Part shown: one piece after another, positions 1-10,170 of the stretch
How the letters are laid out: every line of letters starts with the position of its first letter
Position numbering within the stretch: position 1 is the stretch's first letter
DNA from: Vitrella brassicaformis CCMP3155
Taxonomy: Eukaryota > Protista > Chromerida
Length of the DNA: 64,000 bases
NCBI GenBank assembly: GCA_001179505.1
Contig: CDMY01000453.1
Span: 10,060-74,059, forward strand
Reading direction: 5' to 3'
Position numbers and translations under genes: made by a program
Notes under the pieces: model-generated
The model's database searches: none
Told to the model about the DNA's origin: nothing
The model's input: the letters and a program-made list of their open reading frames with translations, nothing else

Positions 1-61
1 GCCGTCCTGATCCGTCTGTTTCCTCCCTCCCTCTCTCTGATTCCCCATCCCAATGGCTCAC

Positions 62-466
62 CAGCGGGGTACTCGGGGTCGATGCTGACATAGGCCCCTC
101 CCGCCTTGAGGATGGCCAGCATGCAGACGTAGAACTGCCCTCCTCTGGGCAGGAAGACGCCCACCAGGTCGTCAGGACCCACGCCACACGCACGGATGAG
201 GATCGACAGCTCGTTGGCGCGCGCATTGAGCTCCCCATACGTCCACACGATGCCGTCCTCATCACACCTGACACACACATCCACGCACACGCACACCATG
301 CACACGGTGCACGCGCAGATCTGTAGGAGTCCTTTCCCTACTCGACGGCGATGTTGGTGGGGTAGGCAATGGCGGAGTTCTCGAATATGTGGTGGAGTAG
401 CGGTTCCGTTCCGCAGTGCGTGTGCGCCAGACGGGCGAGGTGGCGACTCACACCCGCATCCGCCAT
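62..466 (-). CDS. NRPS-type adenylation (A) domain protein, first two exons (466-342, 267-62); gene continues beyond the left edge
   Basis: Splicing the GT-AG intron 341-268 gives MADAGVSRHLARLAHTHCGTEPLLHHIFENSAIAYPTNIAVECDEDGIVWTYGELNARANELSILIRACGVGPDDLVGVFLPRGGQFYVCMLAILKAGGAYVSIDPEYPA. This contains NRPS core motifs A1 (TYGELNARAN) and A2 (LKAGGAYVSIDPEYP). The next donor GTGAG is at 61. Not in the ORF track. Confidence 0.88.
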
Positions 467-883
467 CGTCACCACTCACCAAATGGCCAACTGCCTTCGA
501 CCGGAGGCCACTAAATCACACCGTCACACCGCGGTGAACGCGGATGACCGGCAGAGGACAGGGAAAGGAAGCAGGGAGCTGAACTCTCAGTCAGAAGAGG
601 GGAAAACAGACGGAATGACTGAGAGAGTGACCGAGCCAGGACTGCCTTCCGGAGAGGTGGCGGGAGGGTAAACCCGCCTAGGGAGGGCCAGGAAGGGCCA
701 GAACAGCTAGAACGACGGAGAAAGGAAGAAAGGGAGCCTAGATCTCTGAGCTCGCAAAAAGGAAGGGTTTAGGACGCGATCCCCTGTGAAACCGCTTCTC
801 CCCCTTCAGTTCCTCCCCCGCCTCTCCTTTTCCCGGTTTCTTCTTCTCAAACCGGAGAAGGAACTGAGCCGAATGCAGCCACA

Positions 884-3130
884 ATGCTGAGTCCGGCGCT
901 TCTGCCACTGATGCGGCTGGTGCGTGTGGCCACCCTGCTGCTGTCGGTTGCGAGCGTCCCCCAGGGCTCGTATGGCACCATCATCCCGCTGCAAACAGTG
1001 AGGGGGGCCGTCAGGGGCCATCTCTGACGGACATCTTCGGTGTTTGTGGTTTGTGGTTTGTGTGCAGGTGTGGCGGTGGGTAGCCGGGTGGTGGCCGCGG
1101 GGGGAGGTCAGCAGGCCGAGCAGGATGCAGAGGAGGCTCATGCAGATGAAGGCGGATGGCAGGACGAAGGGGCCCACATTCTTCCAGCCTATTGCCGGTC
1201 AGCATATATAAAGCCACACACAGAGCAGTGTGTGTGACTCCCTGTTGTGCTCAGATTCCGCTCGTCCGTTTTCGTATGACCCGACATTTCTCGGCCCTGA
1301 TTTGACCTTCACGCCGCTGTCCCGTCCCTCGTCGTTTGCCTGCCGCAATGACTGCCGTGCGTTCAGTACCTGCACCTACTTTGTGTTCGACACAGCGAAA
1401 CAGTTGTGTTGGTTCAAGAGTGACAAGACGGGCGAGATTGGGAGGGCCGGGATGGTCTCGGGAGACGCCAACACAGGTGTGCATGGGATGCATAGGTGCC
1501 CGAGTGATTCACTGCTCTCTCCGTCTGCCTTTCCCAGCGGATACGTGTTTTGAGTATGACACTGTTTATCACGGCGATGAGCTGCCCTTTTCCCCAGGGA
1601 GCCTCCCCTCCCCCCTGTCGCCCTACGCGTGCCAGCAGGCCTGTGGGGCCTCGCCCCTCTGCCAGCACTTTACTACTTTTCACATGACCTCCGGACACAA
1701 TAGTAATAGTGGCAATGTGACGAGGGCGTGCCACTTGTTGAAGACCAGGGACGAGGGGAAGTCCATGACACTGCTAGAGGCCGTGTCTGGGCCCAAAAAA
1801 TGTCCAGGTACGGACACCGGCAGCCCGACTGATGTCAGCCTGCAACCACCATTGTGTCCTCTTGTGTCACAGGAATCGTATTATCGCATATGGAACAGGA
1901 GCCCGTGGTCGTCAATGCATCGTCACGAGAAGCCCTGGAAGGGGAGGCATCAGAGAGCAGTGACGAGGGGTTTGGAGAGTGTGTGACGGATCGCATGTGT
2001 GGGAATCGCATCAAGTGGGAAAGGGAGCTGGGCATACCCAGGAGGTGGACCGCATCGGACTTCCCACCTGGACTTGAGGCCTTCGGTGGCACGGTGAGGA
2101 GAGAAAGACCCAGAGACACGACTGACGGAGGGCATATCGGTGTGTCCTCTTGCAGTACCACATGGTTCTGTACAACACTGATTTGCTGAGTGGCGAGGAG
2201 CCGTGCGCACCGGACTTCACATTCTACTTCTGCAAAGATGGACTCTACCATGTAAACACCACCACTTATCCCTGATGATGCCATGTCTCCCGTCTCACAT
2301 CAGCTGAACCAGACCGCCGCCCACCTGTATTGCGGCGTCGAGGGCAGCGAGTCAATCACGCCAGGATTCGCCGTCAGATTCGCGCCATGCAGAGTGTAAC
2401 TCAGGCCACATACATGCCCATGACACTGATGGTCTCTGTCTCTGCGAATCTGCGTATGTGTCTCGGCGTTCCTCAGCTGTCGTCAGAAGAACTGGTCATC
2501 CTGTTACGATTGGGGCCACTGCGCTCAAGAGGTCGCAGCTTATCAGGGCGGGGGCCACTGCGCTGGCCACCATGAAGTCATACACCTGCAAGGGCGACCT
2601 CAAGGCGATGGGCAAGCTGTGTGACGCGTACGCCGGGGAGGTCTTTTGCTGGGGCATCGACAGCAACCTTATTGAATACGGTGGGTGAAGTGGATAGACA
2701 GGCGCGCCATGACAAGACACTTGCTGGAGTCGGTGCGTTTTGCAGATCCGCTCGACCAGGGAGACGCAAGTGAGGAGCCTGCATGGCACTGCGATAACAC
2801 CTGTCTGTCTGTCTGCGGTGCTTTCTTGCCTGCAGTAGAGCGCACCAAAGCGGTGTGCGCTCGCGCATGTGCCCTCAAATTCTATGGCGGGGCACACCGC
2901 TGCCAAGTGAGTTCAGAGGGAGGGGAAACAGACAAGAGGCGGTGAGTGAGAGATGCCGGCGTATTGTGTGATCTGCAGGGATTTTTGTGGCAGCGTGAGC
3001 ACAGCTACTGCATCCTTGCGCAGGACAAAGAGGTCACATCGCCGAGGGCAGTCGACAAAATGGAGGAGAGAAACATGGACTTCTATGAAAAAGGTCCACA
3101 CGCTGAGATGGCCACCCAACGAGCCGAAGA

Positions 3131-8633: not shown

Positions 8634-10170
8634 TCAGATGTCGGTCTTCATGCGTCTCCGCTGCTCTATGTAGGTCAGATCGCTCTCGTCTTTTCTTTCC
8701 TCGGCCTCTTTCTTCTTCTGGGCTCTCGTGCGAGGTATCACCATCGGGGAGACTTCGGTGACATCGCTGTCGCTCTCATCTCCATGGTAGGAGCTCTCGA
8801 AAGGCAGTCTCTCTTGTGAAATGGCTGTGGATGAGGGGGGATGCATTGGCCGCGGCGCGTGCTCGCCCTCCTGCAAACAAGCGCGAGACACCAAGACGAG
8901 CGACGTGTGTCTGTCTCCCTCCATTCAGGCCTCTGACATTCGTAGCTATCAGGCCACTGACCAGCTTGTGTGATGATGTCTTTCGTTTGACTCTCTTGAT
9001 GTCGGGGTGCTGAAAGGCAAAAAGGCAGCAAGCAAAGAGACAGGCAGACAACGTACGTGGACAGGACTTCTTCAGGGAAGTGCGTTTGTGTATCCAATCC
9101 CATTCACCGTGAAGGCAATCAGTGCTGGGCAGGACATGAGGAGGAAGTCGCACACCCAGGTCCGCTTGGAGATCAGCAGCACAGCCGACACCCATATGGT
9201 GCGAATCACCGGGGCCGTGAACAGCCTGTAAGTAGGAGCCAAGCAGAAGAACAAACAGCATGGTACATCCATCTCGCTGCGTGTGCCGAAGGATGCCCAA
9301 CCGGTGCATGAGGGCGAGGCCGGCGGAGAGATACCACTTCGACACCAGCACATGGTCAAATTTCTGACATACAAAGTAGGAAAATGAGGTTATCGTCTTT
9401 GTTCTTGCCCACGGGCTCGGCTGACCAGTATGAAGACGAGCAAAAAGTAGATGCACCAGCTGTCCCACAGCGCCAAGAAAGTGTACCCGAGGATGTCCTT
9501 CAGGCGCCAATACAGCAACATCACTCGTTTCTCGGCAGCAGTGTGTGTCTCCTCCGCTATCCGCTTGGCGAAACAGAAGCGCAAGAAGAGCGGCACGGGC
9601 ACGGCCAGAAGCACCGACCACAATGACGCGAAAAATACTGCCAAGTCGAGACAGACAGAGACATACATGAATGACCGAATGACAGCAGTGTGTCGCACAT
9701 AGATTGCTGGGCTGTGCGTCTGTCTCACCGTGCCAGCTCGGTATAAAGGGGTTGCCCAGCGGGAAACACACGTCAGCTGTACGTACCGAGGCAAATTTCA
9801 TCTTAATTACAGTGTATATATGGTCTGTGCTCATTGGTGGGTCGACTACGTTACGTACGTGATGGCTGGAATGCGCATTGTGCGTTGAAGAAGAGAGACG
9901 AAATGAAGAGCTCCGTGAGGATACCCGACAACTCGACCGAATACCGCTGCGTCCTGCATTATTAACGAAAAGGCCTCTGATGATCTCGATGTGCCGTGCG
10001 TCTGTTCACTCACTCACCGTGAGATGATGGGGTCATACGGTAGGACCTTGGGCACTGAATTCATCCACAGACAGGTAGATGAGACACATTCATTCATGTA
10101 TGAGGCACGCGTGTAGCCAGCCGTACGTGGGTGTTCTCGGATGGCCACTGTTGTGACGAGCTTTCTCGGC
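8634..10170 (-). CDS. C-terminal multi-pass membrane region of the PKD1-like gene
   Basis: Spliced WGPRKLVTTVAIREHPLPKVLPYDPIISRTQRYSVELSGILTELFISSLFF resembles the polycystin-1-type 'H(P/W)...(F)TRxQR...L...' segment that precedes the TM bundle. It is followed by hydrophobic exons (VFFASLWSVLLAVPVPLFL, LGYTFLALWDSWCIYFLLVFIL, APVIRTIWVSAVLLI) and a charged tail ending RRRMKTDI*. Confidence 0.62.

Follow-up and report, generated by a model that had tools for sequence, protein, structure and literature searches.

A predicted lysine-adenylating synthetase of the Pls/PosA family, encoded by a duplicated and intron-containing gene in the chromerid Vitrella brassicaformis

At the extreme left edge of a 64,000 nt stretch of the Vitrella brassicaformis CCMP3155 genome (hereafter the window; positions 10,060 to 74,059 of contig CDMY01000453.1, here C453), two short exons carry adenylation motifs of non-ribosomal peptide synthetases (NRPSs), raising the question of what kind of enzyme begins there and what it might make. 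The original prediction, drawn from the window sequence, proposed a spliced eukaryotic NRPS with an adenylation (A) domain at its very start and an unknown product, and listed A-T-R reductases, A-T-TE enzymes and membrane-bound Pls/PosA synthetases as possible types. Our analysis favours the last of these. We consider it likely, with a probability of about 0.85, that the product is a membrane-bound homopoly(amino acid) synthetase with a single module, that it belongs to the Pls/PosA family and adenylates L-lysine, and that the gene has prokaryote-type ancestry and was duplicated in the lineage; this reading is built on sequence comparison.

A split gene at the window edge

The gene starts at the left edge of the window, and window positions 1-480 hold its start codon, exons 1 and 2, intron 1 and part of intron 2. 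Coordinates on C453 are window coordinates plus 10059, and about 10 kb of C453 to the left of the window was examined too. The original prediction had recommended a check of this flank, and the gene does continue there, through 20 more exons (C453:10023-4171, minus strand, outside the window) to a TGA. The full model comprises 22 exons at C453:10525-4171 on the minus strand of the V. brassicaformis nuclear genome, with a length of 4,581 nt or 1,526 codons, running from the ATG at C453:10525 to the TGA at 4173-4171 without a single internal stop. All 21 introns have GT..AG ends and measure 61-112 nt. To build the model, we combined a frame-keeping GT-AG search with tblastx matches that run collinearly with a paralogue (scaffold C384), and curated five junctions by hand. 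Exons were searched and scored one by one.

Exon 1 (window 342-466, minus strand; 41 codons plus 2 nt, with the ATG at 466-464) encodes the N-terminal start of the adenylation domain and reads ..LLHHIFENSAIAYPTNIAV. It is followed by intron 1 (window 268-341, minus strand; 74 nt, phase 2, GT..AG), with the donor GT at 341-340 and the acceptor AG at 269-268; retention of this intron would introduce an in-frame TAG at window 340-338. Exon 2 (window 62-267, minus strand; 206 nt, 68 full codons) carries motifs A1 and A2 and is matched by PF00501 and TIGR01733. Both exons had been placed at 466-342 and 267-62, and these coordinates are borne out by the GT-AG junctions and by collinearity with homologues. 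Comparison with homologues supports the splicing of intron 1: set against a profile of 55 prokaryotic homologues that have no interruption here, the two exons stay in register to within 2 residues, with exon 1 residues 12-41 on profile positions 18-47 and exon 2 residue 7 on position 53.

Intron 2 (97 nt, phase 1) has its first 61 nt in the window (window 1-61, minus strand), opens with the donor GTGAGC at 61 and ends at C453:10024, 35 nt past the window edge. At this site the frame of the C384 paralogue is uninterrupted and reads ..DPEYPPERVQST.. / ..DPEYPPERVQSTLED..; on C453, exon 2 ends in ..DPEYPA, the split codon G+AG supplies E, and exon 3 starts with RVRSTIED. Splicing at window position 61 restores exact collinearity with the paralogue, which confirms the donor at that position.

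The 5′ end of the gene had been left open in the original prediction, where a GGTGAGT at window 480-474 was offered as a possible donor of an upstream exon. This sequence need not be a donor. An in-frame TGA, read from the sequence at window 476-478 (minus strand), lies 9 nt upstream of the ATG, and in the alignment to the 55-member profile of full-length prokaryotic Pls/PosA proteins the initiator Met lands near position 7. Together, these two observations indicate that the N-terminus is complete, and argue against an upstream coding exon.

Base composition follows the same boundaries. In-frame GC3 is 0.78 in exon 1, 0.81 in exon 2 and 0.85 in the exons gene-wide, against an overall GC of 0.57 for the introns, a contrast that supports the gene model; intron 12, read in frame, has a GC3 of 0.55. 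At the 3′ end, GC3 is 0.86 in the 50-codon C-terminal tail and 0.50 in the sequence past the stop. For four exons (3, 12, 16 and 17) the prokaryotic profile gave no significant match, and these were delimited by GT-AG sites, frame closure and composition. An extra in-frame intron inside exon 9 (C453:8595-8416) was considered and rejected, its GC3 of 0.93 being coding-like.

Pfam scans of the nearest ORFs on either side of it revealed no sign of a gene cluster. Just upstream, on the opposite strand, window 1336-1986 (plus strand) holds a 216-aa ORF with a weak PAN/Apple-like match (PF14295, E 0.0024, below cut-off), which may be an exon of an adhesin-like gene. About 500 bp past the gene stop, a 300-N assembly gap lies between poly-G-encoding runs (C453:3400-3700), which leaves the 3′ UTR and the neighbouring gene beyond it poorly defined.

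Domain order of the predicted product

Exon 2 alone matches PF00501 at 60.5 bits (E 1.7e-16; cut-off 29.9), positions 1-61 of TIGR01733 with an E-value of 6e-18, and positions 53-114 of our own prokaryotic profile at 64.6 bits. The two core motifs that had been predicted for the first two exons are both found in exon 2, WTYGELN being A1 and LKAGGAYVSIDPEYP (LKAGGAYVSID) being A2. Its best models are those for amino-acid adenylation, many acyl-CoA ligase models matching at weaker E-values, and in a search of the PDB with exon 2, short exons do not place Pls (7wew) over other A domains. For the sequence beyond the window, the original prediction had looked to motifs A3-A10 and a carrier domain, and both are present. 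Motifs A1-A10 are all legible in exons 2-10, where individual exons match PF00501 and PF13193 and cover profile positions 53-519 in order as the A domain. The carrier (T) domain follows in exon 11, with the motif FFKLGGNSL, which includes the phosphopantetheine serine (PF00550, 36.5 bits against a cut-off of 20.8).

The C-terminal half of the product is matched by TIGR02353, the Pls/PosA terminal domain, in exons 13, 15, 18, 19 and 20. Exon 20 alone scores 206.5 bits (E 6.5e-61), and the single-exon scores total approximately 330 bits, to be read against a curated cut-off of 423.1 bits that applies to a whole protein; two complete bacterial comparators pass this cut-off, at 674.5 bits (Schlesneria, 1,370 aa) and 555.2 bits. 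Our own profile, built from 55 full-length prokaryotic homologues, has 1,332 positions. Of these, the exons cover positions 53-1330 in order (613-1330 by the C-terminal exons), and the sole departures are cross-matches among three internal repeats. The exons also map in order onto residues 84-1368 of the 1,370-aa Schlesneria protein, one of three complete bacterial proteins that align to them in the same order. Ordered coverage of a profile of full-length homologues argues that the gene is complete.

Some 900 aa of transmembrane (TM) and TIGR02353 sequence come after the carrier domain. Kyte-Doolittle analysis gives exons 13 and 17 two TM segments each and exon 20 a strong segment with a weaker one ahead of it, which makes six predicted TM helices in three pairs. 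The repeats are apparent in both directions, as the bacterial C1, C2 and C3 segments cross-match exons 13, 18 and 20, and the exons cross-match regions of the model. In an AlphaFold2 model of exon 20 (mean pLDDT 80), residues 75-143 fold into a helical hairpin (pLDDT >90), which is followed by core helices and then beta-turns. The order in this model is the order given for PosA, in which a TM hairpin is followed by core helices and a left-handed beta-helix (PMC10522769). Hexapep matches were below cut-off (E 0.006-0.008), and a Foldseek search of the exon 20 model against the PDB returned no significant match, with only non-significant serine acetyltransferase rows. The layout can be written as A - T - [TM1-TM2-C1] - [TM3-TM4-C2] - [TM5-TM6-C3].

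No exon matched the condensation domain PF00668 in the Pfam scan, and no thioesterase or reductase family was matched by any exon in the Pfam and NCBIfam scans. With neither a condensation domain nor TE/R, the product departs from the canonical modular NRPS (C-A-T...TE). The proposal that the protein starts directly with its A domain, with no condensation domain ahead of it, thus agrees with the position of the Met near profile position 7, the upstream TGA and the absence of PF00668. Of the enzyme types originally listed, the Pls/PosA option is upheld by the TIGR02353 C-terminal half, while the A-T-R and A-T-TE options fall away, neither R nor TE having been matched; the domain scan that had been suggested found T and the Pls-type TM/TIGR02353 region, and none of C, R or TE. 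The acyl-CoA ligase models that match exon 2 would suit a plain acyl-CoA ligase, and one might also think of an A-T-R or A-T-TE NRPS-like enzyme or of a fragment. However, the ligase models match less well than the adenylation models, a carrier domain and the long TM/TIGR02353 region follow with no reductase or thioesterase match, and the frame stops 50 codons past the terminal domain, exon 22 matching no other family. We regard these alternatives as excluded, and a complete Pls/PosA-type synthetase as the far better description.

The A domain has one peculiarity. An insert of about 93 aa lies between A6 and A7 in exon 9 (C453:8640-8365); it is partly of low complexity (GEKERERERDG) and has a GC3 of 0.93. 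It is absent from all 55 prokaryotic homologues, and the C384 paralogue also has an insert at this place, interrupted by an intron.

Pocket code and proposed product

The ten Stachelhaus positions of the A domain, located from motifs and then from profile columns (10/10 match states), give the pocket code DAESIGTVVK, in which the diamino-acid pocket residues Asp235 and Glu239 are present. This code is identical at 10/10 positions to that of Streptomyces albulus Pls, which is marked as experimentally lysine in the published code listing. As a control, the same columns were read in prokaryotic family members, yielding DFECLSAVTK in Streptomyces and Embleya loci, DMEHNGTVSK in Rugamonas and Janthinobacterium, and DGESVSVVNK in two others. 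Recovery of the published DAB, Orn and beta-Lys codes in this way validates the choice of columns. Code identity with the lysine-loading S. albulus Pls makes L-lysine the predicted substrate. The specificity code that the original prediction had asked for is therefore of the lysine type, and its description of the product as unknown no longer holds as far as the substrate is concerned.

By analogy with the S. albulus enzyme, we infer that the product is an epsilon-poly-L-lysine-like polymer. Our data are consistent with a model in which the A domain, judging by homology, would adenylate L-lysine and attach it, as a thioester, to the phosphopantetheine arm of the carrier domain. From there, the three-fold C-terminal beta-helix/TM domain would repeatedly hand the lysyl unit on to a side-chain amine, either that of free lysine or that of the growing chain, and the resulting cationic isopeptide polymer, resembling epsilon-poly-L-lysine, would be released without a thioesterase. 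Carrier domains need a phosphopantetheinyl transferase for their activation. A 4′-phosphopantetheinyl transferase gene was detected at C666:48340-48648 (plus strand; PF01648, 48.4 bits) as the sole match in a scan of Vitrella's own genome, in which four candidates were scored, and its product likely activates the carrier domains of the Vitrella genome.

One alternative is that this Pls/PosA-type enzyme makes something else despite its lysine-type pocket, such as a chain with a different linkage, only a very short oligomer, or a polymer built from another diamino acid. It is the C-terminal domain that determines linkage and length, and in Vitrella this domain is at most 44% identical to the prokaryotic homologues found and has no solved structure; the A domain bears the lineage-specific insert of about 93 aa; and the pocket code is degenerate in the Pls/PosA family (PMC10522769). 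Nevertheless, all ten pocket positions agree with a biochemically characterised enzyme, and the same ten columns cleanly split the Orn, DAB and beta-Lys enzymes. On balance we consider a different product unlikely, and a lysine polymer of the epsilon type remains our preferred reading. No report of polylysine from Vitrella was found in the literature searched.

Gene copies, introns and known relatives

A six-frame scan of the whole genome placed the Pls/PosA family at only two loci, the C453 gene and a paralogue at about C384:60380-66530, recognized by collinear tblastx matches. The C384 copy is collinear with the C453 product, about 67% identical to it over approximately 1,300 residues, and has the same code, DAESIGTVVK. 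Over 1,145 codons the two copies differ with a dN/dS of 0.28 and a dS of about 0.96, the former indicating that both are under purifying selection. It is thus improbable that the C453 locus is unexpressed or decaying, with only the C384 copy functional, a scenario that sits poorly not just with the dN/dS ratio of 0.28 but also with 1,526 codons over 22 exons free of stops and frameshifts, with intact A motifs, carrier serine and three repeats, and with a GC3 of 0.85 throughout, insert and C-terminal tail included.

The wider family is prokaryotic. A genome scan with alignment of exon 20 and fragment homologues yielded at least 591 prokaryotic loci from many phyla, including archaea, and the best 80 of these are only 36-44% identical to exon 20. 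Used alone as a query of genome contigs, exon 20 gave no match. In a search of protein fragments, the lengths of which exclude the full-length product, its best matches were metagenome fragments of at most 44% identity, with no 100% self match; the corresponding search with exon 2, among candidates of 120-381 aa that likewise exclude the full-length product, returned generic NRPS fragments of at most 63% identity and no self match, and hence nothing derived from a transcript that spans the 341-268 junction. A quick maximum-likelihood tree of exon 20 (LG+G4) pairs the two Vitrella copies (SH-aLRT 99) on a long branch, and no prokaryotic sequence is a supported sister to them. The nearest row to the pair is a JGI metagenome fragment, P0045 (385 aa), also on a long branch, which could come from another eukaryote with the Pls/PosA family. 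Eukaryotic homologues besides the Vitrella pair include those of Nematostella, Planoprotostelium and fungi. From the distribution of the family, prokaryote-type ancestry is plausible for the Vitrella gene. The horizontal bacterial origin raised in the original prediction is plausible on the same grounds, but no donor can be named at an exon 20 identity of 44% or less.

Given an overwhelmingly prokaryotic family (at least 591 loci), and the fact that bacterial scaffolds had to be removed from the Vitrella assembly (PMC4501334), contamination by bacterial DNA has to be weighed. Against it stand the 21 spliceosomal introns, the paralogue on another scaffold with its own intron set, the identity of no more than 44% to the prokaryotes found, the sister relationship of the two copies (SH-aLRT 99) and the host-like composition of the 74-kb scaffold. 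We consider contamination excluded because of the introns and the divergence. The gene is better seen as nuclear: an ancestral gene of prokaryotic type would have resided in the nucleus long enough to gain 21 spliceosomal introns and would have been duplicated in the lineage, giving the C384 copy.

The two copies differ markedly in where they are interrupted. Only about eight intron positions are common to both, and at least 16 differ. At least nine introns are private to C453, following DPEYPA, ASVEEI(W), GELLVG(G), PPGPET, RKKIPM, VVLRLF, MLGAKL, HMTLKK and DRIMKM, and at least seven are private to C384, at GRIDSQ|VKIRGF, AELFSD|VLNVER, SLSAAQ|FISALR, VPGEHP|WGWYFL, LTFAHQ|FYSTMF, YSFLLA| and DDVTVQ|. 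Wherever one copy has a private intron, the other has an uninterrupted open frame. Intron 1 is a case of its own, being of phase 2 in C453 (window 268-341) and of phase 0 in C384 (C384:66283-66424), 1 nt apart; the offset can be explained by sliding of one intron or by two separate insertions at a shared AG|GT site.

The approximately eight common introns predate the duplication, and the private ones, 16 or more, are the outcome of gains or losses since then, the copies having a synonymous divergence of about 1. Given an intron-less ancestry, the pattern suggests many intron gains since the duplication. As a family of prokaryotic type would ancestrally have been intron-less, the two copies would give a polarised record of intron gain. 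The combined proposition, that Vitrella makes an epsilon-polylysine-like polymer with two diverged synthetases which record polarised intron gain, is possible, if somewhat doubtful, and we put it forward as tentative. If true, this would be the first epsilon-polylysine-like cationic polymer from an alga or alveolate.

Overall, the gene is sound, complete and of a known family, and what began as a hint at the edge of a window is now a full gene model open to testing. According to it, a coral-reef-associated relative of apicomplexan parasites would be able to make an antimicrobial polymer of the polylysine type, which has so far been demonstrated in bacteria and fungi alone, and the differing intron sets could inform how fast introns colonise bacterial-type genes in chromerids. 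The novelty is modest, as the membership of Vitrella in the family was already tabulated in 2023: Supplementary Table 2 of Patel and Gulick (PMC10522769) gives CEM14083.1 of V. brassicaformis with the code DAESIGTVVK. CEM14083.1 is the sole Vitrella entry there, the C453 and C384 loci both match its code, and the paper makes no mention of a duplication or of gene structure in Vitrella. Since the family had been tabulated, the added value of our work lies in the exon structure, the two copies under purifying selection and their differing intron sets.

Among known systems, the closest parallel is S. albulus Pls (BAG68864.1; A-domain structure 7wew), which shares the order of A domain, T domain, six TM helices in three pairs and three tandem soluble repeats, lacks a TE and has an identical pocket code. 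The Vitrella gene differs from it in being eukaryotic and nuclear, in its 21 introns, in the insert of about 93 aa between A6 and A7 and in an unconserved C-terminal tail of 50 aa; the C3 region of its product is approximately 36-44% identical to prokaryotic family members, Streptomyces loci included. The delta-poly-L-ornithine synthetase PosA of Acinetobacter baumannii (PMC10522769) belongs to the same TIGR02353 family, and the predicted AlphaFold order of TM hairpin, core helices and left-handed beta-helix appears to be shared; its pocket, in contrast, is the Orn code DMEHNGTVSK, whereas that of Vitrella is the lysine code. Lastly, Epls of Epichloe festucae, a eukaryotic Pls-type enzyme described as having a conserved lysine pocket, has been shown to make epsilon-polylysine (PMC7179176), and differs from the Vitrella synthetase in being fungal.
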